The notes below the pieces were generated by a model that worked only from the letters and a program-made list of their open reading frames with translations, made no database searches and was not told the origin of the DNA. DNA of 64,000 bases, from the IMG/VR virus record IMGVR_UViG_3300017917_002374, positions 1 through 64,000 of that record; one strand, written 5' to 3'. Made by a program: the position numbers and the translations under genes. Positions 26,135-41,457 of the stretch are shown here, one piece after another. Within the stretch, counting starts at the first letter, position 1. The number at the start of each line of letters is the position of its first letter.

Positions 26135-26620
26135 ATGGCTAGACCAAATCCTATACGACGTATCATGCAATCCGCGCTGCCTAGTGTTACATATCAGCGA
26201 CAGAAACTTTTTAGGCCCTCTCCAAAAGATGTAAAATATGCGTATAAAATAATCAACAGGCATGTGTTTAACAATCAGCTGAAACTGCCACCTATCCAAC
26301 TGGGCGTGACCAGGGGCTATTGGGGCATGTGTATTGGGTTACACGAAGAAACTAGTCCTAACACTTTGTGCAGTCTAAAACTCAGCGACAAATACTTTTG
26401 TGTGCAATGGTTCATGAACACTCTGGCACACGAAATGGTACATCAATATCAATGGGACATCAATAGTGAATACAGACAGCAGCACGGACTGGAACCTTTG
26501 ATGAGCCACGGTCCTAGTTTTTTTGCCTGGCGTGATGTCATGGACTACTATGGACTGAGCTTGAAAACTGCACATGGACAGCGACGTTGGTTTGCACATC
26601 AAGATTTCAATAAGTGTTGA
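26135..26620 (+). CDS. SprT-like zinc metalloprotease
   Basis: TLAHEMVHQYQ, HGPSF. Confidence 0.85.
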   Translation: MARPNPIRRIMQSALPSVTYQRQKLFRPSPKDVKYAYKIINRHVFNNQLKLPPIQLGVTRGYWGMCIGLHEETSPNTLCSLKLSDKYFCVQWFMNTLAHEMVHQYQWDINSEYRQQHGLEPLMSHGPSFFAWRDVMDYYGLSLKTAHGQRRWFAHQDFNKC

Positions 26621-26670
26621 CAAACTTCCCGCAGTTCTCTATAATTGACTCTAGTTAACCAGGAGTCAGT

Positions 26671-27261
26671 ATGCCCCATTTTGTACCTACCGTATTAGAA
26701 AAAACCAGCAACGGCGAACGTGCGTATGATATTTACAGTCGCCTGCTTAAAGATCGTATTGTGATGCTGGACACAGATGTAAATGAACATTCAGCCAGCC
26801 TTGTGGTTAGCCAATTGTTGTTCCTAGAAAGTGAAAACCCTGATGCAGACATTCTTTTCTATATTAACAGCCCTGGTGGCGTGGTTACTGCTGGCATGGC
26901 TATCTATGATACTATGCAGTACATTAAACCTGACGTATCTACTATTGTAATGGGCCAGGCCTGCTCCATGGGCAGTTTGTTAGCACAAGCCGGCGCAGCA
27001 GGCAAACGCTATATTCTGCCCAATGCACGTCACATGATACACCAACCGTCAGGGGGTGCAGGTGGGCAAGCCACAGACATGGAAATTCAGGTGCGTGAGA
27101 TACTCAAAATGAAGCGTACACTTACAGAAATCTATGTCAAGCACAATAGTGCAGGCAAAGTGTATGACGAAATCCTAGCAGACATGGAACGTGATTTCTT
27201 TATGAGCGCACATGAAGCTGTGACGTATGGACTGGCAGATCAAGTGATTGAAACCAGATAA
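26671..27261 (+). CDS. clpP: ClpP protease subunit
   Basis: [24 protein letters not shown] (Ser), MIHQP (His), ERD (Asp); promoter TTGACA(26617)-17-TATAAT. Confidence 0.97.
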
Positions 27262-27282: not shown

Positions 27283-27318
27283 TAAATAATAGGAGACAGT
27301 TTGTCTCCTATTTTTTTA
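27283..27318 (+). promoter_or_regulatory. Late promoter TAAATA overlapping the 5' arm of a terminator hairpin at the head of the modular-protein cluster
   Basis: TAAATA 27283; aataggagaca-gtt-tgtctcctatt plus T run. Confidence 0.65.
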
Positions 27319-27323
27319 TTATT

Positions 27324-28991
27324 ATGCGTCTAAACGAATTTGAATCACTGGATCTTGCTGTTAATTTTCATGACGAATTGAACCCAAAACTATGGGATGA
27401 CAATCGCATGCGTCCCGAAGTACGTGCAGCACTCATGCGTATCGCAGAAAATTTCAAAGATTTCTTGGGTGTTGATATCTATGATTTACTGGATATCACA
27501 GTAAGTGGTAGTAATGCAGCATATACCTATACTTCACACAGCGACATTGATCTACATCTTGTGGTCATGATTCCTGAAGCACACGAAACCGAACTCAAAG
27601 AACTGTTCACAGCTAAAAAATATCAGTACAATGATCAACACGATATCAAGGTACGTGGATTTGATGTTGAACTGTATGTGCAAGATGCAGAAGATCCGCA
27701 TCACAGCATGGGCATCTACAGTGTGCTCAACGATCGCTGGATCAAGCAGCCTAAAAAAGTACGGGCACAAATTGATGATATAGAAGTACAAGAAAAATAT
27801 CGCAGCATCAAACACAGAATCAATCGTGCTATTGTTAGCGACGACTACGACAGTGTGCAGCAGGTTTGGAACAGTGTGAAAAACATGCGCCAGACTGGTC
27901 TAGAACAAGGTGGTGAATTCAGCCCTGAAAATCTTGCATTCAAGATTCTGCGAGCAGACGGTACCTTGGAAAAACTCAAGCGTCATATGGGCAATCTCAA
28001 AGATGCCGAACTCAGCATACACGAAGCCACTAATGCTCCTAAAAGAAAAAGTGAAGTGTATCTAGACATGGATGGTGTGTTGGCAGATTTTTTTGCAGAG
28101 TATGCAAAACTGGCGGGCGTTCAAGGAACCTATAGAGACATACCTCCTGCCAAGACTGACCCTACCTTGAACAAAATGGTAGGTACTGATTTTTTTGCAC
28201 GATTGCCTAAGTTTGGATCCGCAGATACCTTGGTCAGCATGGTGACAAGTATATTTGGTCACTATAACATCTGCTCCAGTCCACTGCGCGGAGATCACGC
28301 CAACAGTGAAAAACAAAAACGTATTTGGATCGCAAAACATCTATCACCACAGCCTAAAGATATCATTATAACACCACGTAAAGAACGTCATGCAGTACAA
28401 GAGGATGGCACTCCTAATGTGTTGATTGATGACCGCGGTGACAACATTACCAAGTGGGAAGCAGCTGGCGGCGTGGGAATAAAATATCAAGCAGATGAAG
28501 ATGGTCTTGACACTGTGACTCGTGGATTAAAACGTGCTATGAAAATCATTGCAGGCAAAAAGCAGCTGGTGCCGCAAAAATTAAAAAGTCTAGATCGCAG
28601 CATGCCAGTGGCCACACAGGACGACCCCAAGCCTCTACAGGAAACCGTTAACCAATCAGAAGTGGTCAATTTTATTAAATTTGTTTATGACAGACTGCAT
28701 ATAGACGCTCCGCTACCACGCATCAAACTGCAACAGGAAAAAGAATCTCCAGATCAAAATCGCACTGGTTGGTATAACCCTGATACAAATGAAATGTGGG
28801 TGTACACAGGCAACAGAAATTTGATTGATATTCTACGCACGGTGGCTCACGAACTGGCACATCACAAACAAAGACTAGATGGTGACACTGCTGCCAACAC
28901 TGAACTGACAGACCTAGAAGGACAAGCAGATCAAGTGGCAGGCATAATTATGAAAATATATGTAAGAAAGCATCCGGAGATTATTGAATGA
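27324..28991 (+). CDS. Fusion protein: Pol-beta-type nucleotidyltransferase + HAD 5'(3')-deoxyribonucleotidase + HExxH zincin
   Basis: GSNAAY..SDIDLH / VELYVQD; YLDMDGVLAD..LIDDR; TVAHELAHH; domains joined at IHE and LQE. Confidence 0.8.
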   Translation: MRLNEFESLDLAVNFHDELNPKLWDDNRMRPEVRAALMRIAENFKDFLGVDIYDLLDITVSGSNAAYTYTSHSDIDLHLVVMIPEAHETELKELFTAKKYQYNDQHDIKVRGFDVELYVQDAEDPHHSMGIYSVLNDRWIKQPKKVRAQIDDIEVQEKYRSIKHRINRAIVSDDYDSVQQVWNSVKNMRQTGLEQGGEFSPENLAFKILRADGTLEKLKRHMGNLKDAELSIHEATNAPKRKSEVYLDMDGVLADFFAEYAKLAGVQGTYRDIPPAKTDPTLNKMVGTDFFARLPKFGSADTLVSMVTSIFGHYNICSSPLRGDHANSEKQKRIWIAKHLSPQPKDIIITPRKERHAVQEDGTPNVLIDDRGDNITKWEAAGGVGIKYQADEDGLDTVTRGLKRAMKIIAGKKQLVPQKLKSLDRSMPVATQDDPKPLQETVNQSEVVNFIKFVYDRLHIDAPLPRIKLQQEKESPDQNRTGWYNPDTNEMWVYTGNRNLIDILRTVAHELAHHKQRLDGDTAANTELTDLEGQADQVAGIIMKIYVRKHPEIIE

Positions 28992-30292
28992 GGTACCAAG
29001 ATTTTTTAGCGGAAGGCATACTGTTTGAATATGATAGAACAATCACTGCCAAGAACTATGGAGACAAGATTTTACTTGTAGCAGCCAAAGACCGTTGGCT
29101 GGTTGATCAAATTGCAGGACGCAATCGTCTAGGCATGAGCTTTCAAGAAGCAGTGAAAAAAGATCCTGCCATGATCATAGATGCTATTTTAGAAATACTA
29201 GAACGTGGCGATCCCACCCGCAATAAAGAATACACACAGGCCATTGCCAAGATGTATGCCAATGGTGGCATCATGGCAGAGGATGTGGTATCCACTCTAG
29301 CAGACTACCTGGCTAAGTTTGACAAGCTGAAACGCCGGAAGAAAATTCCGCCGCCACGTAACGACTTCAATCGTTACAAGAGCAAGGATGATTTCTATGA
29401 TGTGGTGGATGAATATCCTGACGAAGAAGCAGAAGACAAACCAGAAGAAAAAAAGAACGCTACGGAACTGTATCGTGATAGCAAACTGATTGTGACCATA
29501 CCCAATGATGTGGAAGCTGCCTGTTACTATGGACAGGGCACACGCTGGTGTACAGCGGGCAAGAACAATAACATGTTTGACTACTATACCAAGGGAGGCC
29601 GTCCACTGTATGTGATCATTCCACGACAGCAGGAGTACCCAGGTGAAAAGTATCAGTTTCACTTCGAAACCAAGCAGTTCATGAATGAACAGGATCGTCA
29701 GATTGGCGAAGACGGCATGCGCAAGCTGGTCAAGCGTTTTCCACAGTTGCCCAAGATCCTGCAGAAGCCTGCAGAGCAGTTCATGATTGCACCACTACTG
29801 TCGCAGGAATACAAGAACATCGTGATAGAAAGCACAGAAGAAGTTCAGAAGGCCACTGTGCAGTTGATCAATCAGTATGCTGACCGTATCATTGCATTTG
29901 GATTCAAGAGTTTGGATGGCTATGGTGTGCAATTGCCAGACGCAGCAAAACAGACCATTGCAGACAGCATGCGTGACTACTTGGCTGACTGTGTGAAAAA
30001 CATGGGCAGCTTTTGGCAGGAGATTACTGCCAAACCAGAACTGGCTCGTGATGAAGACAAGATTGAAAGCCTGCTGAGTGCCAACAGAAATCTACAGGCA
30101 GTGGCAGATAAAAGCGCAGCGGTGGACCAGCTGAAAGCAGCACTGGCACAGACCGGACAGAAGATTCACAAGGATGCAATGGCACACATTATTGAACTCA
30201 CAGTGCGTGATCCACTGTTCCGCTTCATGATGAAACAGGTGGCCAAACTGTACACCGCTAAACTACAGGAGCAGGGCCATGCGCTACAGTGA
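28988..30292 (+). CDS. Putative head-packaged protein with YGxGTxWC domain (PcfJ-like, tentative)
   Basis: N-terminus MRYQDFLAE; AACYYGQGTRWCTA, KYQFHF. Confidence 0.55.
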   Translation: MRYQDFLAEGILFEYDRTITAKNYGDKILLVAAKDRWLVDQIAGRNRLGMSFQEAVKKDPAMIIDAILEILERGDPTRNKEYTQAIAKMYANGGIMAEDVVSTLADYLAKFDKLKRRKKIPPPRNDFNRYKSKDDFYDVVDEYPDEEAEDKPEEKKNATELYRDSKLIVTIPNDVEAACYYGQGTRWCTAGKNNNMFDYYTKGGRPLYVIIPRQQEYPGEKYQFHFETKQFMNEQDRQIGEDGMRKLVKRFPQLPKILQKPAEQFMIAPLLSQEYKNIVIESTEEVQKATVQLINQYADRIIAFGFKSLDGYGVQLPDAAKQTIADSMRDYLADCVKNMGSFWQEITAKPELARDEDKIESLLSANRNLQAVADKSAAVDQLKAALAQTGQKIHKDAMAHIIELTVRDPLFRFMMKQVAKLYTAKLQEQGHALQ

Positions 30293-32141
30293 ACTGATTG
30301 AAAACACAGACAGCGACGATGATTTGTTTGCTAAACCATTGGCGGATAGAATTCGTGCTCGTTTGGCAGAGTTAGAAGATCAGGACTTTATGGAACCTGA
30401 GGACATGATTGACCAGGTGGCTGAGGAGTTCAATCTAGAAGTAGAACAAGTTTATGATCTACTGGATGACGAAGTATACGAAAACACAGATGACGATGAT
30501 CTGTTTGGCGGCAGTGATCGCGGGACGCCCTCTCCTGAGAAGGCAGTGGCCAAGTTCAAGATGTTTTTTCCTATAAACAAGCGTGTGAGCTGGAGTAAGA
30601 TGCATTTTGGAACCGTTGACCGCTTGTTTGGCTTCTCCACCGACTCACGTTTTCACGCAGGAGCCAGTTATGACAGACACAGCTACTGGGGCACACAGGC
30701 CTATACCAATCGCCAGACTGGCCTAGGCTTGCTGATCTATGAAGACAGTGGTCAAGGTACCTGGGCATATCTAGGCGCACAGAGTCGTGAGGATATGGCT
30801 CACATGATACAGCAGTTGATTGCAGCAGATCAGTTGGAAGATCCTGAGGCAGCAAAGCAACGTCGCCTGGCCAAACAACAAGGCCGTGCTGCTGCCGCTG
30901 AGAAAAAAGGCATTCGTGTGGGCGCCAAGATACGAGTACCCTACCAAGGACAAACTGCCACAGCAGAAGTGGTCAGCATTTCCAAGGCTGGTAAACTGAA
31001 CCTACGCATGATAGATGGACCAGATGCAGGACAACTGCACTCCTGGCAGCCCTCCGCACACAGCGTTAGAAAAGCAGATGTGCTAGGTGAGAATGATGAT
31101 GACGATGACGAGCTGTTTGGTGAGCCAAGATCCTACATGTTCATTGTGGCAGCTCCAGATGATGAAATAGTAGGAAACTACAAAAATATTGAAGATGCTC
31201 TAGACGCAGCACGATTTTTAGTAGATGATTATCTAGAGGCAGGCTATGAGGACACTGATGCTATTAGAGTTATGAAATACAAAACAGACAGTGATGGCAT
31301 GGTTGATTTTGACGAAGCAGGGGTCACAGTTGGCACTATCTATCTAGGCACAGGAGAACTGGCAGAAAATTTTGACGACGATGATATGTTCGCTACCCCC
31401 ACAATCAAGTTTGCTGACTTGTTCAACGAGTACGACGAGGATCAATTAATGGCACAAGGTTTTCAATATGGAGACCATCCTGAGCAGGACATTGAAATAC
31501 TCAACGACTATTTAGAAGACTATAAAGATTTCCGTGTGGTTGGTATCAGTGGCGGCGAGCATGACCTAGTGCTGCATCTAGACCGCAGCAGCAAACTAAG
31601 AGAAACAGACGATGATGAACTGTTTGGTTCACTAGCACTAACCGCTGCCAAGATTGGTAAACTGTTAGGTGCAGCAGGCATAACCAGTGGTGAAATCGTT
31701 GATCCTGAAAGCGTAAATCTAGCCTTGCACAGAATTGCGGCACTGGACAAGTATCGTATCCGGGCAGAAATCATGCAGCAGCAGTGGTTGAACATGGATG
31801 AAGACACTGCCTGGAACATGGTAGATGACATAGCCAATGTGGTATACGACATCAACGGTGACGGCTGGGAACCAGAAGACACCATCTACAACGAATCAGA
31901 TGATGAGCTGTTTGGTAAAAAGTGGCATGAGCGCATCAACATGAGCAGCATTGAGTTGGACGGCATAGATCGCAGTGACAGTCCTGACTTCTCAGATGCT
32001 CATGTGAGCTATGCAGAGTTTGACGACGGCAAGCCACTGAATAATGAACAGTTGGAATGGCTGACCAATGAGCTGGGCAGCACAGGTGAATTGCATGAGC
32101 TGGTCTGGGACAGTTTGCACGAGGGCCAGCATGCGTTATAA
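30279..32141 (+). CDS. Modular acidic polyprotein-like protein, 6 xE-DDDLF linkers
   Basis: LIE-NTDSDDDLF, VYE-NTDDDDLF, LGE-NDDDDDELF, LAE-NFDDDDMF, LRE-TDDDELF, YNE-SDDELF. Confidence 0.75.
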   Translation: MRYSELIENTDSDDDLFAKPLADRIRARLAELEDQDFMEPEDMIDQVAEEFNLEVEQVYDLLDDEVYENTDDDDLFGGSDRGTPSPEKAVAKFKMFFPINKRVSWSKMHFGTVDRLFGFSTDSRFHAGASYDRHSYWGTQAYTNRQTGLGLLIYEDSGQGTWAYLGAQSREDMAHMIQQLIAADQLEDPEAAKQRRLAKQQGRAAAAEKKGIRVGAKIRVPYQGQTATAEVVSISKAGKLNLRMIDGPDAGQLHSWQPSAHSVRKADVLGENDDDDDELFGEPRSYMFIVAAPDDEIVGNYKNIEDALDAARFLVDDYLEAGYEDTDAIRVMKYKTDSDGMVDFDEAGVTVGTIYLGTGELAENFDDDDMFATPTIKFADLFNEYDEDQLMAQGFQYGDHPEQDIEILNDYLEDYKDFRVVGISGGEHDLVLHLDRSSKLRETDDDELFGSLALTAAKIGKLLGAAGITSGEIVDPESVNLALHRIAALDKYRIRAEIMQQQWLNMDEDTAWNMVDDIANVVYDINGDGWEPEDTIYNESDDELFGKKWHERINMSSIELDGIDRSDSPDFSDAHVSYAEFDDGKPLNNEQLEWLTNELGSTGELHELVWDSLHEGQHAL

Positions 32142-34479
32142 CGAGATCATTGAAAGTGCGGATGATGACGATGACCTGTTTGGTCGCGGTCTGCATCATC
32201 GTATCGCTGCGGCTCTACTGGCACAGGCCGAGGAAGACCAGCGTATCGCAGATGAAGAACGCGGACTAGGTGACCAGATTCATCGTAATGTGCAAAACGC
32301 AGATGAGTTTGAAGCACAAGCTAGAAACTATCGTTACATAGCAGACGCTTTTAATCAAAGCATGGCTCAGGGAGTTAAAGTTTATCGCAGTCTAGACCGC
32401 AGCTGGAAAGGTGCAGTGGATGATGTTGTGGACATTGAGCTTGACATGGACTTCCGCGACTATGTGAAACAGATTCCAGAAAGTGCGGATGACGATGACT
32501 TGTTCTCTACCAGTCCAAAGTTGGATCGCCGTCAAGAGCTGAAAGCCAAGGCCATTCGTCGCATAGAAAAGCGTGACGCACTGAACATACAGCCAGGCAC
32601 ACGACTCATGGTCAAATGGGACAATGGCAAATACTACAAAGGCAAAGTGGTCAGACTCACTCCCAGTGGCCGCGTGATAGCACAGGTAAAGTTTCACAAT
32701 GTGGGCTGGCCCTTGGAAAAGAACATCAGTCCACGTGACATCAAGCCTGAACACATCTTGAAAGAAACAGATGATGACATGTTTGCCAAGAACAGTCAGA
32801 TGAGCCAAGACATCAAAACCAAGCTAAAACAAATTGATGATCCTTATCTGCGCACTGTACGCAAGATTCGTGAGTTGGCAAAAACCAAATATGGTGCAAA
32901 AATTCGTGTGAGTGGTGCACCCAAGACATCGGCCCGCGGCAGAGCAACTGTTTGGGTGGGCGACTATGATGCAAATTATCAAATTCCAAAAACTACCCCT
33001 GAGGCCTATGCTGTAAAAAACGATTTAGAACAGATGGGATTTGAGTGTCGTTTTACAGACGCAGGTTGGCTCAGTGTCAAGGTTCCGCCAGTGTTCTCTG
33101 ATCTAATCAGCGAAGAAAGCGACGACGAGCTGTTTGGGCAAGAAGATGGCGCTCGTCTGGCACTGAAACTATTGAAACTGTTACGAGCAGCAGTGGCTCG
33201 CGATCCTCGTGGTGTGGGTGAAATGCTGAAACAGTACAGCAATGAAAACAGCACTCTGGCACAGAGAGTAGATTATACCTTGGATTACATGGCACAGGCC
33301 GTGGGCATGCCACGTGAGATATTTGACAAATACGCAGATGACTTTTTCATACTGCCATGGCCCACAGGTGTGGACATAAACCGTCCATGGCAGATCTGGG
33401 ATGCACAGGTGTTGGACCGAATCATTGAGACCATGCGACGAGTGGTTTATGGCCGGGACATGAATGAAAGTGATAATGACGATGACCTGTTCAGCCATAG
33501 TGTGCATGAAGAAGTGATATATCGTGTGGAAGAATATAAAAAAGGTCTTGAAAAACATCTAGAAGTAGTACAGCAGGCAGATCCTGAAGACGCAGAATAT
33601 CTTGAGGATGTGATCAATGATGTGAATCAAGTGTTGGCCAAATTGCAGAAAAATTGGATAGAAGGCATGGATGCACTGCTACAAGCATCAGATAGCGAGG
33701 ACTGGGCAGAAAATATCATGCACGAACTCAAGGCAGATAATATACCGTTGAACAGATACTACCGCGCACCTTGGCTGCGCGAAGACGCAGACGATGATGA
33801 ACTGTTTGGTGAAACTACCTTGGCAGATCGTGTGGCTGATTTAATCAAGCACAAGCAACGTGTACGCATTCTAGTACCTGGTGCCATGGGCTTTGTGCGA
33901 GCTGTATTTCATGGCAGCACTGCTATCAGTCGCAGCATGAAGAGCACTACACGCTACGCCTGGCCAGGACTGCACGGCGAACGAGCTAACGGCCTTGAGT
34001 TGGTACAAAATCCTGCCACACGCACCTGGGACATTGTAGAGCGAGACCAGGCTGTAAACATGCGTAAATACACAGAAGACATTGGTGACGATGAACTGTT
34101 TGGCAGCGGCTACAGTGCTGTGCAAAGACAGATCTATGAAACAGGCCGGCAAATGTTGCAAGCACTGAAAGACAGTTGGAAACAGGATTCTGTGCGCAGC
34201 GAATTTCAAACTTACATGGATGCCGACGATGGCGACGCTATGTTTGATCTTGTGCAGGATGTGACCAGAGTGCATGGTTGGCCAGCACTGGTAGTAGACA
34301 CTGTGATTCGTGAATACACTACCATGGAAGGACTCAACGACTTTGGCTGGATGCTGGAAGAAGGCAGCTTCAACGACCTAGAGGAAGCCTGGGAAAGATT
34401 TAGAACAGATAGAGAAATCAAAAACGAACCCTGGTTCCAAGCGGAAGCAGACAGATTTATGAAAAGAAAACTAAGATGA
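32131..34479 (+). CDS. Modular polyprotein-like protein, 7 xE-DDDLF linkers
   Basis: Start MRYNEIIE at 32131; IIE-SADDDDDLF, IPE-SADDDDLF, LKE-TDDDMF, ISE-ESDDELF, MNE-SDNDDDLF, LRE-DADDDELF, YTE-DIGDDELF. Confidence 0.75.
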   Translation: MRYNEIIESADDDDDLFGRGLHHRIAAALLAQAEEDQRIADEERGLGDQIHRNVQNADEFEAQARNYRYIADAFNQSMAQGVKVYRSLDRSWKGAVDDVVDIELDMDFRDYVKQIPESADDDDLFSTSPKLDRRQELKAKAIRRIEKRDALNIQPGTRLMVKWDNGKYYKGKVVRLTPSGRVIAQVKFHNVGWPLEKNISPRDIKPEHILKETDDDMFAKNSQMSQDIKTKLKQIDDPYLRTVRKIRELAKTKYGAKIRVSGAPKTSARGRATVWVGDYDANYQIPKTTPEAYAVKNDLEQMGFECRFTDAGWLSVKVPPVFSDLISEESDDELFGQEDGARLALKLLKLLRAAVARDPRGVGEMLKQYSNENSTLAQRVDYTLDYMAQAVGMPREIFDKYADDFFILPWPTGVDINRPWQIWDAQVLDRIIETMRRVVYGRDMNESDNDDDLFSHSVHEEVIYRVEEYKKGLEKHLEVVQQADPEDAEYLEDVINDVNQVLAKLQKNWIEGMDALLQASDSEDWAENIMHELKADNIPLNRYYRAPWLREDADDDELFGETTLADRVADLIKHKQRVRILVPGAMGFVRAVFHGSTAISRSMKSTTRYAWPGLHGERANGLELVQNPATRTWDIVERDQAVNMRKYTEDIGDDELFGSGYSAVQRQIYETGRQMLQALKDSWKQDSVRSEFQTYMDADDGDAMFDLVQDVTRVHGWPALVVDTVIREYTTMEGLNDFGWMLEEGSFNDLEEAWERFRTDREIKNEPWFQAEADRFMKRKLR

Positions 34480-36722
34480 AAAGCAAAGATTTCCTAAATG
34501 AAAAGTGGAGCCAGAAGTACAAGAAGAGCATCAACTGCTCTAACCCCAAAGGCTTCAGCCAACGTGCGCACTGTGCAGGCCGCAAGAAAAACGAAAGTGT
34601 GGAACTGGATGAAATTGATCGCAGAGGATTCCTCAAGGGCCTTGGTGCTGCTGCACTGGCAGGTGCAGGTGGCGCTGCCATGGCAGGAGATCTAGAAGGT
34701 CAGATAGGCCCACTGCCCATCATGGCTACTATCAAAGTGCAGATGCCAGACGGCACTGTGAAAACAAAAAAGATTGATCTTGGTCATGAGTACGACTACA
34801 GACTGGATGATGCCAAGAAAGAAATTGAACAGATCCTGGATCGCAAGGGCGTGAAGAACTATACCATTCACTTGGACAGATACAAGGACAATGAGGCATA
34901 TCTGGATCGTGAACAGATGAAGCCGCAGTCAAAGACTGACAAAAACGACTACATGGATCGTAAACCCTATCAGCCCAAAGGCGGCAGTGGCAGCTATGTG
35001 GACAACACACCTGCCCGGGCCAGCGGCAAACACAACTACATGGATCCTGCCAACTACGAAGAAAGTTTACAGGAATACGGCGATACTGCCCGAGGTCAAA
35101 AGCAGTTGACCCGGGTTCACAAACGTGCAGTTGATCGTCTAATCAAGGCAGATGACCAAAACATGTTAGAGCCAGATTATACCAAAAGAGATTTAAAAAC
35201 AGTAAGAAAGAATGCAGACACTGCTAACCGTGCTTGGGATAGATTCACAGATCTGGATTTAGATGAAGCATCAGTTTATAAAAAAGATCAAGACCTAAGC
35301 AGTATTCCTACTCAAGAACTTGAAGCATTTGTTAAAAAACATTGGGGTGGTGGTATTCCAACTTATGGCCAAGGCAAAAGTGTTCAACGAGCCATGCGAG
35401 AATTGCGCCGCAGACAAAAGCAAGGTGTGGCGGAAGGCTCTGCTGGAGCAAAATACAAAATAAAAAGCATTGGCAAAGACAAGAACGGTGATTACTACAT
35501 CAGCCCTAACACAGGCAAAAAAGTTTACAAGAATGCTAAAGTGGGTGATCACGAAACTCCACGCGGGGAAGTAAAACCTAAGGTGACGGAAAACAATGAC
35601 AGTGATGAAGAATTGTTTAGCGTGTCTCAAACGCCACCACGAACAGCACAGGCACTATACCATTGGAGCCGCATGGATCCCAACAGATACAGTTTTCGTG
35701 CCATAGCTGAATTTGCCTTGAGTAACAAGCTGACCTTAAAGCAGGCACTGGAAGTTACTTCAAGGTTTGACGAGTACAACGAACAGATGCAAGATGAATA
35801 TGGTGTTGATGATGATCAAATGAGTGATCTGTTTGGCGCATATGAAGAAGTGTGTGATGCATGGAACACTGATCCAACAGGCGATACCAGTACAAATGAC
35901 TCCTGGGAAAAACTACGAGAAGCAGATGCAGAACTAGCAGAACCACCTGAGCGTCCACGCAAAACCACAACAAAGACCAAGACCAAACCTGATATCAAAT
36001 TTGATATTCCGTTCCAGCAAGATCAAGATCGTCCTCTGGCCAAAACAGATCCACTGGATGACTTGAAAAAGAAAGCTGGACTAGGTGATGAGCCTAAGGT
36101 CAACATTAAGAAGGCCAAACAAAAGGATACCTTGAGCAAAACCGCAGGCATTGGCAGTGATGACATGGCAGACATGCTGAGTCGCATGCGTAACATTGAA
36201 ATAGATCGTGATCTAGAAGCCTATCCAGAGCCAGAACCACCAGAGCAGTTGCCATCAGTGGAAGTGAACACAGCCAATTTGCCAGCAGTGGCAGGGCAGG
36301 CATTACAAGCCGCAGGCGTGCAGAATCCAGATTTCCATCAAGTGGCTAACCTGCCAGGCAACATGGCAGACCAAATTCGCCAGCTGGGCAAGAGTCTGTT
36401 TGGCAGTCTAACCATGACACCTACCAAGCGTATTCACGTGGTGGCCAATCTAGGCGGACAAGGCCCTAACAGCTCAGCAGAAGTAAACGCAGTGGCCGGC
36501 TTCCTAAAAGACCACGGTAAAGATCTAGGCCCAGGCGACATTGACTTTGACAATGTCATGCCAGGCTACAAGGCACAAACACACATGTTCTCAGCAGCAG
36601 GCATTCGCTGGATGCTGGTAAAAGACTTTGCCGGACAGTACATCTACTGCTGGCCAGAAGAAGACAGCCATGATGCAGTGGATGCGATTGGCCAGGACAC
36701 GGACGTTAAAAGACTAAAATGA
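34476..36722 (+). CDS. Modular polyprotein-like protein with internal Tat-like signal
   Basis: MKSKDFLNE; LDE-IDRRGFLKGLGAAALAG; QGVAE; VTE-NNDSDEELF; further LQE/LDE/LRE joints. Confidence 0.7.
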   Translation: MKSKDFLNEKWSQKYKKSINCSNPKGFSQRAHCAGRKKNESVELDEIDRRGFLKGLGAAALAGAGGAAMAGDLEGQIGPLPIMATIKVQMPDGTVKTKKIDLGHEYDYRLDDAKKEIEQILDRKGVKNYTIHLDRYKDNEAYLDREQMKPQSKTDKNDYMDRKPYQPKGGSGSYVDNTPARASGKHNYMDPANYEESLQEYGDTARGQKQLTRVHKRAVDRLIKADDQNMLEPDYTKRDLKTVRKNADTANRAWDRFTDLDLDEASVYKKDQDLSSIPTQELEAFVKKHWGGGIPTYGQGKSVQRAMRELRRRQKQGVAEGSAGAKYKIKSIGKDKNGDYYISPNTGKKVYKNAKVGDHETPRGEVKPKVTENNDSDEELFSVSQTPPRTAQALYHWSRMDPNRYSFRAIAEFALSNKLTLKQALEVTSRFDEYNEQMQDEYGVDDDQMSDLFGAYEEVCDAWNTDPTGDTSTNDSWEKLREADAELAEPPERPRKTTTKTKTKPDIKFDIPFQQDQDRPLAKTDPLDDLKKKAGLGDEPKVNIKKAKQKDTLSKTAGIGSDDMADMLSRMRNIEIDRDLEAYPEPEPPEQLPSVEVNTANLPAVAGQALQAAGVQNPDFHQVANLPGNMADQIRQLGKSLFGSLTMTPTKRIHVVANLGGQGPNSSAEVNAVAGFLKDHGKDLGPGDIDFDNVMPGYKAQTHMFSAAGIRWMLVKDFAGQYIYCWPEEDSHDAVDAIGQDTDVKRLK

Positions 36723-38998
36723 GATACAACGAACTGATTGAAAACGATGATGAGGACATGTTTGGCGCCAGCGAACGTGTGGATCGTGACCTGCGTCGCG
36801 CTACCTTCAATGCCAATATACCAGAAATGATTCGTCGTGTGCAGCAGGGCCTACTGGCCAGTGCAGATCGTCAGGCGCGAGCCATGGCCATGGAGTTTGT
36901 TAGAGAAGCCAACTATCTTGAAAAAGAAGAAGTGTATGGACTGGCTCGCGAGATATTCACACACGATGCACCGCAGCATCTGCATCAGGCCTTTGCTATT
37001 GTGAGTGAGGATCCTGCCATCATTGCAGATGAAGATATGCTGAGTGACGTCTTGATGACCAACAACATATTCACCAACATACGCAAGGACAGCGATCTGT
37101 GGATCTATGCAACAGAAATGATAGAAGATTTTGCTGAAGGTGACGAGGAACTGGAATATCACCTGGGCATGGAAATAGAAGGCACAGTGGGCAATCTAAT
37201 AGTACGGCTCATGCAAGACGCATTTGCCAATGTGCGAGCACTGGGTGAGAATAGCAAGCCAGGTGTGCCGCAACCAGGGCCAAGTTCTGGGGCTCCTAAG
37301 AAATTTGGCTCTGATGCTAAAATACAAACTCGCCAGATGACGGTAAATGATATTATATCATCTGTGCCTGGTGTTCCCTATTACAACAATGTGGTGGATG
37401 ATTGGGACGCCAAAGATTACAGTTGGGGCGTGACCAAAAAGGTCATAGAGTACGCAACCTACTTGAAGGATCATCCAGAAAGTCTGGCACAGTTACCGCC
37501 AGCAATAGTGTTGAATGGCAAGTTTGAAGATGGTGCCCACAGGGTATCTGCCATATGGTTGCTGCAACAAAGAATGGATCCTAAAAATCCCTTATGGAAA
37601 CGTGCCAAATTAAATGTTCAGTTTGTTGAGCAAGGTGTCACAGAAGCCACAGACGACGAACTGTTCAGCAAATCACGTGAGCGTCCTGTGAATCGTTTTA
37701 CCATTTATGTTAATAATAAACCACTGCGCACCATGATAGATCTGGAGCAGGCGGCAGGTGTGGCAGAGGACTTGATAAACCAAGAAACCCGGCGAGTGAA
37801 TGTGCAGGTGGTCAACGCCGTTGATGGTGAAATACTCTGGAGTGGCGGCACTGACCGCATGGGCAAATGGTATGGTGCTTATGCAGCTTATCTTGAAGAA
37901 ACAGAAGATGATGACGACTTGTTCAGCAATCGCCCCAACGGCAAAGTAATAGCACATGATCTAGAACTGTGGCTGCGTCGCAGACAGTCAGGCAGTCGTC
38001 GTCCGCTCAGCAGCTATTCTGCAGATGCCATAACGGAAATTATAGCAGCGTTTAATAAAAGTTTTGCAGCAGGTGTGCAGGCCTGGGACGTGGCGCCAAT
38101 CATTGCAGATCTAAAATACGACATTCGCGAGTACATTGGCAGCAGTCAGCACATTGATCTTGCTGACCATGTGCAAGAACTCAATGAAGCTCCTCTAGCA
38201 GACTACGAGCCCATGGGTGACTTTGAAAAGCCAGGCCCCTTTCGTGGCGCAGATAAGAAATTAATTCCTCATCCTACCAACAAGCTCAAGACCGCACGTT
38301 TCTTTGAACAAACACCCTATGACTTTAGACTGTTCTTCAGCAACATTCCTGGCACCGGTCGTTACAGCGAATACGGTCCAATGGAACCACGGGTCATACA
38401 AGAGATATTCAAGGATGCTGCTGAACAGATTCTAGCAGGATCAGAAAATGCCATTACAGTGGTGTTTGTGGGCAACAAAGGTGACAGCAAGGTCATGCTC
38501 ACACCCTGGATGATGGCGCATAGAATTGGACATGCTGTGCAAGCCGGCACAAGATTAGCAGGTGGACGCGGCGCCTGGCGCGAAGCAGAAAATCATTTCT
38601 TCCGTGGCATCAATCAATTGCTCAAAGACTTCTATGGCAAGAGCAGCAACAATCGTTACGACGGTGAAGCCAACTGGGCCATGAGTCAAGAATATGCAGC
38701 ACTGTTCAATGCCATTGGCACACAGCGCAGTAGCCGCAAAGGTGAGATCAAAAGACCATACGAATTTCTGTATGAATTGTTTGCACAGTATCTGGGCACA
38801 GGACGGATTGAGCTCAATCCACTGCCACAAAAACAATCCTATGGTCGCAAGGTGTTTGGTCGCAGCAGTCAAAGTCTACGCATGACACCTGGCGCAGAAG
38901 AGGAATCAAAATACACAACTGAAGTCTTAGCACGTGACATGGAAATCATGTTCAGCGATGTGCTGAGTGAACTGGTTGGGAAAGTGTTGGTGATGTGA
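36719..38998 (+). CDS. Modular polyprotein-like protein with a ParB/Srx-like module and an HxxxH module; 3 xE-DDDLF linkers
   Basis: MRYNELIE-NDDEDMF; LPPAIV..EDGAHR; VTE-ATDDELF; LEE-TEDDDDLF; MAHRIGH. Confidence 0.7.
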   Translation: MRYNELIENDDEDMFGASERVDRDLRRATFNANIPEMIRRVQQGLLASADRQARAMAMEFVREANYLEKEEVYGLAREIFTHDAPQHLHQAFAIVSEDPAIIADEDMLSDVLMTNNIFTNIRKDSDLWIYATEMIEDFAEGDEELEYHLGMEIEGTVGNLIVRLMQDAFANVRALGENSKPGVPQPGPSSGAPKKFGSDAKIQTRQMTVNDIISSVPGVPYYNNVVDDWDAKDYSWGVTKKVIEYATYLKDHPESLAQLPPAIVLNGKFEDGAHRVSAIWLLQQRMDPKNPLWKRAKLNVQFVEQGVTEATDDELFSKSRERPVNRFTIYVNNKPLRTMIDLEQAAGVAEDLINQETRRVNVQVVNAVDGEILWSGGTDRMGKWYGAYAAYLEETEDDDDLFSNRPNGKVIAHDLELWLRRRQSGSRRPLSSYSADAITEIIAAFNKSFAAGVQAWDVAPIIADLKYDIREYIGSSQHIDLADHVQELNEAPLADYEPMGDFEKPGPFRGADKKLIPHPTNKLKTARFFEQTPYDFRLFFSNIPGTGRYSEYGPMEPRVIQEIFKDAAEQILAGSENAITVVFVGNKGDSKVMLTPWMMAHRIGHAVQAGTRLAGGRGAWREAENHFFRGINQLLKDFYGKSSNNRYDGEANWAMSQEYAALFNAIGTQRSSRKGEIKRPYEFLYELFAQYLGTGRIELNPLPQKQSYGRKVFGRSSQSLRMTPGAEEESKYTTEVLARDMEIMFSDVLSELVGKVLVM

Positions 38999-39258
38999 TG
39001 CTCAAACTATTGGTTCTCAGCGTGGCACTGAATGCGGCAGAATTGCCATATAGAGAGTTGGAAAAGTACTACTGGGACTGCGATACCCTGTTCATGAAAG
39101 GTGAACTGGGCGGGCAGGACACCTGGAGTTGTCTGGCTGTCACTGACGAGTTCCAAACCTATTTTGACAGCAAAGAAGATTTCATGATCTATTGGCACGA
39201 ACACAGAATGCAACAGTGGCAGAGTCGTGGTTATTACCCTAAGGCAGAGATATACTAA
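38998..39258 (+). CDS. Small secreted hypothetical protein
   Basis: Short signal-like N-terminus. Confidence 0.55.
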   Translation: MLKLLVLSVALNAAELPYRELEKYYWDCDTLFMKGELGGQDTWSCLAVTDEFQTYFDSKEDFMIYWHEHRMQQWQSRGYYPKAEIY

Positions 39259-39259
39259 A

Positions 39260-39985
39260 ATGAGATACCACGAAATAGTAGCAAAAGATTCACCTGCTGA
39301 GGATAGGCATCCTAATGATCGTCCATATGGACCAGAAGCCAAACCTACCATGCCCAAGGGCACAGTTAGAGTGGATGTCAGCGACGTGTATGATTGGTAC
39401 AAGCTGGGCATGAACATCAGTGATCTTAAAAAAGCCAACAAGAGTCAGTTTGGTAAAGGTCCTCCTAGCACCATAGTTTCTTTTGGTGACGAAAACACTG
39501 AACACAAGTATATCAAGGATCTTGAAAATCTTGGACTTACGACCACTGACATAGATCCTGTTGATCCCAATCAGCCCCGAGGCATGCCGCGTCAGAAAGT
39601 TGATCCCACATTCAATGTAGATGAAAACTTTGCTGATGGCAAAGTAAAAGGCAAGAGTCGTCCGGGCCGTGTGAAACGTGCAGGCGCAAGTTGCAACGGG
39701 TCAGTAACTGATCTACGAGCTCGTGCCAAGAATGCTAGCGGTGAAAAGGCAAAAATGTATCACTGGTGTGCAAACATGAAAAGTGGTCGTAAGAAAGCCA
39801 ATGAAGCCAGCCCCACAGGACTAGAGTTTAAAGGTTACCCATGCACCAAGGACTGTTCAGGACATCAAGCCGGGCATGATTGGGCAGAGCGTTGGGGTAT
39901 TGAAAATCCAGATTCTTGTCCTTACAGCAACAACAGTTTCTGGGAGGGCTGTCTAGCTCGCACAGACGACTTTCAAGATGAGTAA
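39260..39985 (+). CDS. Modular protein with three E-joined modules, two of them Cys-rich
   Basis: MRYHEIV start; VDE-NFADGK..SC..HWC; ANE-AS..GYPCTKDCSGH. Confidence 0.65.
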   Translation: MRYHEIVAKDSPAEDRHPNDRPYGPEAKPTMPKGTVRVDVSDVYDWYKLGMNISDLKKANKSQFGKGPPSTIVSFGDENTEHKYIKDLENLGLTTTDIDPVDPNQPRGMPRQKVDPTFNVDENFADGKVKGKSRPGRVKRAGASCNGSVTDLRARAKNASGEKAKMYHWCANMKSGRKKANEASPTGLEFKGYPCTKDCSGHQAGHDWAERWGIENPDSCPYSNNSFWEGCLARTDDFQDE

Positions 39986-39993
39986 ATAAGCAT

Positions 39994-41349
39994 ATGAAAA
40001 TTACAGAAATTACCAAAGGTCGCACATTAGGCGGATTCCCAGTCCAAGTGTTAGACATACAAAACAGCGAAGTAGACGAAAATCAATATCGCCGCGAGTT
40101 TAAACGCAACGAGCTAGAACATGAGCTAGGACACGAAACAAACAACTATTCCGTTAGTATTAATGGTAAAAGTTGGAAAGTGTTTGCGAGCAAAGCACAT
40201 GCCGAAGCAGTGGCTCGCAGTGTACAAATGAAAAATCCTACCAAAAAAGTAGGTGTGCATGAGACTGGTGAATCAGTCTCAGAAGCACTCAAGCTGAACG
40301 CTCCGCAGCGTCGCATGAGTAGAGATGAGTTACAAGGCTATGCTGATCGTATTAAAACAGGTACTAAAACCAAACAAGATAAATTTGCACCAATTATTCA
40401 CGGGAGTAATATCAAGGCAATCACGCAGAGCGACAATCCTGATGACAAATGGGATCTGGATGATCTAGCGGCGCAGATTACAAAACGTCCTTCTAAAATA
40501 CTTGGCACCAATGCCAAAATGGAAAAAAGCCGTACAGAAGGCGAGATTGTGTATGACCTTACGCTACCAGCACTTTCCGGCATAGTGGTGGATGAAAGTA
40601 ACGGCGACTTTGTGGAAATCACAACCTGCCCAGGTGCAGGTGAATGCCAATTGTATTGTTATGCTCGCAAGGGCGGATATGTGATGTTTCCTGCCAGCTC
40701 CATGAGTGCGGCACAGGCCTTGAACTTCTTGGTTAATGATCCTGAGGGATACATGGCCATGGTGAATCGCGAAGTTAAAGCACTCAAAGGCAAAACAGAC
40801 AAGCATGGGATTAGACTGGTAGTACGTTGGCACGATGCAGGCGACTTCTTCAGCAAAGAATATTTAGATCTAGCCTATAAGGTAGCAGAAGCCAATCCTG
40901 ATGTGAAGTTTTATGCTTATACCAAGATGGGCGAAGTGGCAGTAGGAAACAAGCCGGCCAACTTTATTGTGAACTTCAGCACAGGTGCCAAGAGTCGTGA
41001 AGTGAAAAAAGTTACCTTACACAAACAAGCAGGCAACATTGTTAAGGACGCCATCACTGTGCCTAAGGACATGTTCCGCAACCTGTTTGTAACAGATGCC
41101 AAAGGCAAGTATGTGAAGGATGAAAAAGGTCGTACACAGGTGCGTGGCGAAGCGGAATGGAATCAATTCAAACAGCAGTTGGGCGCCAAGTATGACATTG
41201 ATCCAGACACCATTATTACATATGACCAAATGCTAAAGATTCCAGAAGGGCCTACGCCCAAGTGGCATGTGGTTATTTTCCCTGCAGGGCATGGCGATCG
41301 TGCTGCAAACAGACTGGACGTGATCAACAGTTTCTTAATGTTTCATTAA
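39994..41349 (+). CDS. Phage GP88-like Cys-cluster protein with N-terminal extra modules
   Basis: TCPGAGECQLYCYA, VRWHDAGDFFS, FYAYTK. Confidence 0.75.
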   Translation: MKITEITKGRTLGGFPVQVLDIQNSEVDENQYRREFKRNELEHELGHETNNYSVSINGKSWKVFASKAHAEAVARSVQMKNPTKKVGVHETGESVSEALKLNAPQRRMSRDELQGYADRIKTGTKTKQDKFAPIIHGSNIKAITQSDNPDDKWDLDDLAAQITKRPSKILGTNAKMEKSRTEGEIVYDLTLPALSGIVVDESNGDFVEITTCPGAGECQLYCYARKGGYVMFPASSMSAAQALNFLVNDPEGYMAMVNREVKALKGKTDKHGIRLVVRWHDAGDFFSKEYLDLAYKVAEANPDVKFYAYTKMGEVAVGNKPANFIVNFSTGAKSREVKKVTLHKQAGNIVKDAITVPKDMFRNLFVTDAKGKYVKDEKGRTQVRGEAEWNQFKQQLGAKYDIDPDTIITYDQMLKIPEGPTPKWHVVIFPAGHGDRAANRLDVINSFLMFH

Positions 41350-41354
41350 CAAAT

Positions 41355-41457
41355 TAGCAAAAAAGCAACAAAAAACCCTAGTATTTGCTAGGGTTTTTTT
41401 ATGGTTGACCAAAAACACCCATTTCTATATAATATGGGTTCAATAACAAATTAGGAG
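41355..41457 (+). promoter_or_regulatory. Terminator + early promoter + SD cassette (start of early region)
   Basis: gcaaaaaagcaac box, aaccctag-tatttg-ctagggtt plus T run, TTGACC(41405)-17-TATAAT. Confidence 0.8.

Follow-up and report, generated by a model that had tools for sequence, protein, structure and literature searches.

A run of consecutive genes in the genome of an uncultured phage raises the question whether their products, which share a short N-terminus, are carried inside the phage head and delivered into the host at infection. The genes lie at positions 27324-41349 of the stretch analysed here (the window), which is the first 64 kb (64,000 nucleotides) of the complete 354,959-bp virus record IMGVR_UViG_3300017917_002374 from IMG/VR, a record with direct terminal repeats; positions marked G000 are those of the whole genome. 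An initial annotation of the window had noticed that eight N-termini resemble the capsid-targeting leader of the internal proteins (IPs) of phage T4, and had regarded the whole block as cargo for the head interior. From the evidence given below we consider it fairly probable that the block encodes T4-type internal (ejected) proteins, some of them made as polyproteins which the prohead protease would cut.

The block consists of nine open reading frames (ORFs) on the plus strand, overlapping or abutting one another, which we call genes A to H and a small ORF (Table 1). All eight N-termini with the pattern M-[RK]-x-x-[ED]-[FIL] are present at real, consecutive and mostly overlapping ORFs, as the initial annotation had stated; gene D starts at ATG 32131 and not at the upstream ATG 32068, and gene G at ATG 39260 and not at GTG 39227. 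When the whole 355-kb genome was scanned for ATG starts with at least 80 amino acids (aa) downstream, 17 starts fitted M[KR]xx[DE][FILVM], and eight of these 17 were the block genes. A position matrix built from the leaders of relatives alone was run over the called genes, gene C not being among them, and it placed seven block genes in the genome's top ten, and below these ten the score falls sharply (13.1 to 7.7); the other top scorers are the single genes listed in Table 1. Outside the block the leader is rare, with about four other genes in the genome carrying it, and at a background rate of about 1.5% the probability of eight consecutive leader genes is about 3e-15. The Arg codons of the leaders vary (CGT, AGG, CGC and AGA) and the remaining leader codons also differ synonymously, which indicates that the leader is conserved as a peptide and not as RNA.

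Comparison with the T4 record AF158101 confirmed that IPII and IPIII begin with MKTYQEFIAE/A (a slash follows the Glu after which a leader would be removed), while IPI begins with MKTFKEF, gp24 with MAKINELLRE/S, gp67 with MEGLIE/A and gp22 with MLKEQLIAE/A. The gene B leader, MRYQDFLAE/G, nearly equals that of IPII and IPIII, and the leaders of C, D and F (MRYxE[LI]IE/[NS]) are similar to that of gp24. In seven of the eight leaders [LI]-x-E is followed by a small residue, at residues 6-9 in B to F and nearer to the start in A and H.

The leader is also conserved in relatives. Two scans of IMG/VR yielded 138 related loci, in which 343 of 2,081 called genes (16.5%) start with the leader, in runs of up to seven leader genes; the 256 distinct leader N-termini have the consensus M-R-A-x-E-F-[IL]-x-E-[ASNG]. 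The gene order in the nearest relative, L061, is ClpP-A-B-C-D-E-F-H. The content of gene A is divided there among three genes, two of which have leaders of their own (MRLQEFDKL and MQSKEFLKG), and the orthologue of gene H starts with MRYNELVNE. The L061 F lacks two of the modules of F, just a 60-aa piece of gene G is conserved, and the small ORF has no match in L061. In the GenBank phage collection no match was found to the block (megablast), nor to F or its ParB-like module (tblastn).

We assign the phage to the uncultured T4-related jumbo phages of the RaK2/PA5oct clade because it encodes a gp23-type major capsid protein (PF07068, 1.9e-101), a gp21-type prohead protease (G000 236195-236833; PF03420 Peptidase_S77, 3.8e-28) and a gp55-like sigma factor (G000 224264-225154). 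The capsid protein shares 66-70% identity with its counterparts in Pseudomonas phage PA5oct, Vibrio phage 2.275.O, Sinorhizobium phage Phosso and Erwinia jumbo phages, and has L-A-E/S near residue 42, at the end of the propeptide. Identity between the protease and T4 gp21 is 37%, the catalytic motifs DHP, GVSSRG and VD being aligned, and the head-module core protein of this phage begins with MNKYEKLIEY. The same DNA is present in at least 20 metagenome runs from pond, lake, freshwater and soil.

The main structural feature of the block, linkers repeated inside C, D, E and F, was overlooked in the initial annotation. These four genes contain 17 linkers of the form h-x-E-[SNT]-x-(D/E)3-5-[LM]-F-[GSA], hereafter acidic-LF linkers, and the remainder of the genome has three loose matches. 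In C, D and F the first copy runs straight on from the N-terminal leader. Homologues of D amount to 31 metagenomic proteins in a word-based search and to 58 clusters at 50% identity in an exhaustive HMMER search; nearly all full-length ones start with M[RK]YxE[IL][IL]E[NS]x-DDDD-LFG, and they carry from 1 to 13 linkers at a spacing of about 100 aa. Among 234 distinct linkers of this family, 216 have [LIVM]-x-E immediately before the acid run, compared with 14% of random 10-mers drawn from the same proteins. Cutting the proteins at the linkers gave 185 modules with a median length of 101 aa, which fall into 27 families, and these families are permuted differently in each protein: the order is 1-2-3-4-6-7-10 in the D of the window, 1-5-2-3-8-4-6-7 in the homologue P0003, 14-8-1-4-6-7 in P0019 and 9-12-1-5-2-11 in P0022. 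One module that stands behind an internal linker in our D follows the N-terminal leader of a C-like protein in L061, and single-module proteins (141 and 148 aa) have the same composite leader.

D was modelled with AlphaFold from an alignment of 19 sequences; the overall score is low (predicted template modelling score, pTM, 0.26) and the modules have per-residue confidence (pLDDT) values of 75-88. Seven segments with pLDDT below 50 (residues 1-18, 118-128, 213-235, 321-337, 441-456, 551-561 and 650-659) match the seven linkers. Since the low-confidence segments coincide with linkers and the modules score well, D is modelled as a string of folded beads on exposed disordered linkers. No function could be recognised in the modules of C and D; Foldseek with this model returned weak Tudor/SH3-like matches for module 2 alone, from which no function follows.

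A second type of junction, (K/Q)-Q-G-V-A-E/G, occurs in 279 copies in 85 of the related loci, with at most 8 copies per ORF, and QGVAEG alone in 115 copies in related loci (among L003-L140). Proteins bearing it often start with the leader, and across the clade at large the junction borders the ParB/Srx-like module of gene F at either end. This junction and the acidic-LF linker have in common just h-x-E followed by a small residue, and this common element is, in our view, the clearest hint that the junctions have the Glu site as their functional core.

By its transcription signals the block is a predicted late-type operon of this T4-related jumbo phage. Both signals which the initial annotation placed at its ends hold: the TAAATA at 27283 is real, and the terminator at the far end, given there as 41375-41400, was confirmed as an intrinsic terminator (Table 1). 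The full T4 late consensus TATAAATA was tried as the late motif of this phage and dropped, because it is not enriched (12 occurrences on the plus strand of the whole genome versus 18 expected), and the genome-specific TAAATA was preferred for this reason. Out of 125 plus-strand copies of TAAATA, 56 fall within the intergenic 5.5% of the genome, which is an approximately 8-fold enrichment (p = 8e-37), and intergenic copies are typically situated 15-35 nt upstream of an ATG, at portal, core, capsid-block and giant structural genes. TAAATA is the predicted late-type promoter core of this phage, from which the block would be transcribed late. The hairpin with a T-run between ClpP and gene A is read by us as a putative terminator of the upstream sigma-70 (ClpP) transcript. 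The 5' arm of its stem overlaps the expected start point of the TAAATA-driven transcript; because a transcript starting a few bases past TAAATA would begin inside the stem and lack this arm, it would read through the terminator. No strong sigma-70 promoter was found within 27324-41349 or in the structural block, and near-consensus sigma-70 promoters are common on the plus strand. Two more TAAATA copies are present inside the block, at 34065-34070 and 39983-39988; the latter ends just 5 nt upstream of the ATG of gene H, so it is no promoter of H and probably a chance match.

We propose that the capsid-targeting propeptide, M-[RK]-x-x-[ED]-[FIL]-[IL]-x-E plus a small residue, would take eight of the nine products into the scaffolding core of the prohead, where the gp21-type protease would then remove the leader after Glu. 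The proteins would remain in the head beside the DNA and be ejected into the cell at infection, where they may act against host defences. According to this proposal C, D, E and F would be cassette polyproteins, with independently folding modules of about 100 aa on disordered linkers, each linker repeating the h-x-E site of the leader followed by the acidic run and [LM]F-[GSA]. The same protease could cut every linker, and about 20 separate small proteins would be freed inside the capsid together with several enzymes, namely the nucleotidyltransferase-like, 5'-nucleotidase, zincin, ParB/Srx-like and GP88 domains. A more tentative extension, which we hold to be possible although somewhat short of an even chance, is that this is a general cassette cargo system: any module of about 100 aa behind the h-x-E/acidic run/LF-G tag would be packaged in a polyprotein and freed by the protease, and recombination at the tags would add, remove and rearrange injected, most likely anti-defence, effectors. 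The acidic-LF part would then be a new signal, serving as a protease exosite or as a retention or ejection tag.

Virion proteomics exist for one relative, PA5oct, and the sole link of the block to virions is the homologue of gene B, EST35_0205, which begins with MKLFEVF and is annotated as 'structural protein, ESI-MS/MS'. The leader is also present in EST35_0150, the head-module core gene of PA5oct, whose product is found in virions. Several observations weigh against the cargo interpretation. Over the whole of PA5oct, four of nine leader-bearing coding sequences are virion proteins versus 93 of 461 overall (p = 0.086), and the PA5oct genome has no such linkers. In the block itself an [LI]-x-E site is missing from the leader of G, while the leaders of A and H have it as early as residues 3-5. 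Whereas T4 IPs are basic, C and D are strongly acidic (net charge -79 and -37). A distance of about 200 kb separates the block from the head genes (236-239 kb), and the genes around it carry near-consensus sigma-70 promoters. The acidic-LF part is conserved beyond the needs of a T4-type site. The interpretation in the initial annotation is supported in part. A T4-style capsid-targeting leader agrees with the gp21-type protease, the site pattern, the rarity elsewhere, the conservation in relatives, the late-type core and the detection of the PA5oct homologue of B in virions. The whole block as head cargo applies to eight of the nine ORFs by their leaders, one ORF being without a leader and G without a site. 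The likeness to T4 IPs extends to the leader and not to the proteins, which are large and mostly acidic while T4 IPs are small and basic.

Packaging by means of the leader does not by itself imply cleavage at the linkers. The products could stay intact as multidomain 'polyvalent' proteins, in which the acidic-LF linkers, including h-x-E, would be short linear interaction motifs that dock, for example, on the scaffold or the shell or, once ejected, on a host factor. This would agree with the conservation of D-D-D-[DE]-[LM]-F-[GSA], a part which a T4-type site does not need, with the single-module proteins that also carry acidic-LF after the leader, and with the known packaging of certain polyvalent proteins in unprocessed form (PMC5512222). 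We nevertheless find it unlikely, as the QGVAE/G junction has just the h-x-E core in common with the linkers, the linkers are disordered and lie exactly at module boundaries, and a module may follow either the N-terminal leader or an internal linker.

An explanation that does without packaging is that the leader is a tag for another intracellular fate, for example through the neighbouring Clp machinery, and that the proteins act during infection. The leader is, on the other hand, almost the same as that of T4 IPII/III, gp21 site and small residue included, the head-module core protein EST35_0150 with such a leader and the homologue of B are both in PA5oct virions, and a terminator separates ClpP from the block. 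These points make us consider the tag rather improbable, even with ClpP directly upstream both here and in L061, sigma-70-type promoters flanking the block and a leader that predicts PA5oct virion proteins weakly. Least credible of all, and very improbable in our opinion, is that the common N-termini and the linkers do not act as protein signals and are conserved DNA joints for cassette recombination, spread by duplication or gene conversion. The modules are shuffled exactly at these joints, but the leader codons differ synonymously and, across many samples, the amino-acid pattern is kept in 256 different leaders and 234 different linkers. Processed, ejected head cargo stays our preferred interpretation, with several independent indirect lines in its favour. 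A possible likeness of acidic-LF to the C-terminal tails of SSB, to clamp-binding motifs and to the tails of the ribosomal stalk was set aside; the SSB type needs a free C-terminus.

The concept of the leader is known from T4, where IPI, IPII, IPIII and Alt have a capsid-targeting sequence (Mullaney & Black 1996; PMC3012670; PMC5694885), and Ip1-3 of T-even phages are all injected GmrSD inhibitors (PMC12373910). Both T4 and the phage described here have a leader of about 10 aa in which a small residue follows [LI]-x-E, a gp21-type protease of their own, genes situated outside the head module, otherwise unrelated proteins sharing the leader alone, and loci that vary between relatives. T4 IPs are, however, basic and short, with 95-193 aa according to the T4 record, whereas the products here have 241-782 aa and are multidomain and mostly acidic; moreover, eight genes stand in one operon and four of them have repeated internal sites with the acidic-LF motif, which T4 lacks. 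What is new is the use of the leader for large multidomain cargo in this jumbo clade and, above all, the cassette polyproteins with their uniform linkers of a processing type. The papers on PA5oct and RaK2 that we consulted do not mention such a leader.

Polyvalent proteins (Iyer et al. 2017, PMC5512222) likewise unite effector domains of unrelated kinds in a single chain, are presumed to be delivered along with the DNA, and have shuffled domains. Zincin and ParB/Srx-like domains occur both there and in the block, while the nucleotidyltransferase and the nucleotidase are specific to gene A. In its domain content the block resembles these proteins, and in its logic the T-even ip loci. For their processing a built-in MPTase zincin has been proposed (PMC5512222), whereas the uniform linkers here match the site of a prohead protease. 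Polyvalent proteins are encoded beside virion structural or packaging genes, unlike the block with its distant position between ClpP and small sigma-70-type genes. The site of phiKZ-like prohead proteases is (A/S/G)-x-E. In phiKZ-like giants such as SPN3US many head-internal proteins are cut by a gp21-related prohead protease (PMC5694885, PMC7411985, PMC10052503) and the propeptides are thought to target the proteins to the prohead, as we propose here, but those propeptides exceed 100 aa and the proteins do not consist of evenly spaced cassettes (about 100 aa) that share a repeated linker. Phage P1 Dar proteins are also large anti-restriction head proteins that are injected, DdrB having ParB-like and zincin domains (PMC12810830, PMC9024508); their incorporation follows a hierarchy of Dar proteins, with no short shared leader and no repeated linkers.

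Internal proteins are the first response of a phage to host defences, and they are well studied in T-even phages alone, where each one is a small separate gene. If our interpretation is true, a widespread freshwater jumbo clade packs far larger and more varied injected cargo, and a rule that can be read from sequence, leader plus repeated processing linkers, would predict head cargo in uncultured phages. Dozens of modules of about 100 aa would become candidate anti-defence proteins, and the arrangement would offer a natural template for packing a number of foreign proteins into a single capsid.

Table 1. Coordinates of the block genes, their linkers and junctions, neighbouring signals and single leader genes elsewhere in the genome (G000).
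Feature	Position	Strand	Product	Leader	Remarks
SprT-like zincin gene	26135-26620				upstream of ClpP
ClpP gene	26671-27261		full-length, Pfam 1.2e-79		perfect 12/12 sigma-70 promoter at 26617-26645
TAAATA late-type promoter core (predicted)	27283-27288	+			35 nt upstream of gene A ATG
Hairpin + T-run (putative terminator)	27288-27312	+			directly after ClpP, ahead of gene A; dG -14 kcal/mol, z -4.7
Gene A	27324-28991	+	555 aa	MRLNEFE	
Gene B	28988-30292	+	434 aa	MRYQDFLAE/G	
Gene C	30279-32141	+	620 aa, pI 4.25	MRYSELIE/N	six linkers, six modules; first acidic codon at 30315, 30489, 31095, 31374, 31608, 31899
Gene D	32131-34479	+	782 aa	MRYNEIIE/S	seven linkers, seven modules of 87-124 aa; linkers at 32161, 32488, 32770, 33121, 33478, 33790, 34087
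Gene E	34476-36722	+	748 aa	MKSKDFLNE/K	acidic-LF linker at 35604; QGVAEG junction at 35421
Gene F	36719-38998	+	759 aa	MRYNELIE/N	linkers at 36746, 37652, 37904
Small ORF	38995-39258	+	87 aa		GTG start; signal-peptide-like N-terminus
Gene G	39260-39985	+	241 aa	MRYHEIV	Cys-rich C-terminal part
Gene H	39994-41349	+	451 aa	MKITE/ITK	Pfam GP88, residues 172-360, 2e-31
(K/Q)QGVAE/G junctions	35421, 37631; G000:C1:119433				
Intrinsic terminator closing the operon	41370-41399	+			dG -16.1 kcal/mol, z -4.3
Near-consensus sigma-70 promoter	41405-41433				after closing terminator
Single leader gene	G000:C1:265213-265593			MKIREIITE	
Single leader gene	G000:C1:278998-279963	-		MRITEVTQE	
Single leader gene	G000:C1:343763-344860			MRVREVILE	contains nucleotidyltransferase-type GDID motif

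The pI is 4.25-6.23 for six of the leader proteins, 7.60 for G and 8.84 for H. At least two unrelated effector domains are present in each of A and F. The N-domain of A is similar to nucleotidyltransferases of the pol-beta type (phrog_36119, 3e-52), its residues 240-393 to NT5C/HAD 5'-nucleotidases (Pfam NT5C 1.3e-5; PDB deoxyribonucleotidases were also matched), and its C-terminus has an HExxH zincin motif (PHROG 87 'metallo-protease', 4e-4); A also matches PHROG 2643 at 7e-21. Residues ~182-310 of F form the ParB/Srx-like module, for which the best Foldseek matches (sulfiredoxin, ParB-N and Noc; E 0.01-0.1) are weak and consistent. The C-terminal module of F (residues ~488-759) is kept widely in relatives, and a search of the Atlas gave zincin-like leads alone; a sequence search of the PDB with F gave no match. 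Searches of Pfam and PHROGs with C, D, E, F and G yielded sub-threshold matches at most, the Pfam MPTase and DdrB-ParB models matched nothing in the block even at E = 1, and a literature search for the linker letters returned noise alone.

In gene E (residues 43-70, within 34476-34700) an L-D-E site is followed by a stretch similar to a Tat signal at residues 46-70, RRGFLKGLGAAALAGAGGAAMA (Pfam TAT_signal E = 0.005-0.009, below the curated cut-off). Cleavage at L-D-E would expose this Tat-type signal, hinting at periplasmic export after ejection. In gene H, residues 38-128 (40105-40380) are homologous, at 43% identity, to a segment from the interior of the L061 E-like protein (L061:7589-7846), and the N-terminal part of H is a further case of a module moving between cargo genes. 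As for the neighbouring ClpP, its PA5oct counterpart is annotated as detected in virions by mass spectrometry.

Another probable cargo locus lies at G000:C1:116136-120270, where three genes start with MYIFEMFEAA (640 aa), MNVFDLFEYN (419 aa) and MKYRELLEAC (119 aa), the 419-aa one containing a QGVAEG junction. The leader variant M-x-[IV]-F-[ED]-[LM]-F is also present in a 78-aa head-module gene at 234938 (MNIFELFDPE), and many polyproteins of relatives begin with a variant such as MNLNNLFE. The structural region contains a single ORF of 6,288 aa (G000:C1:194894-213760, minus strand), with a TAAATA motif ahead of it.

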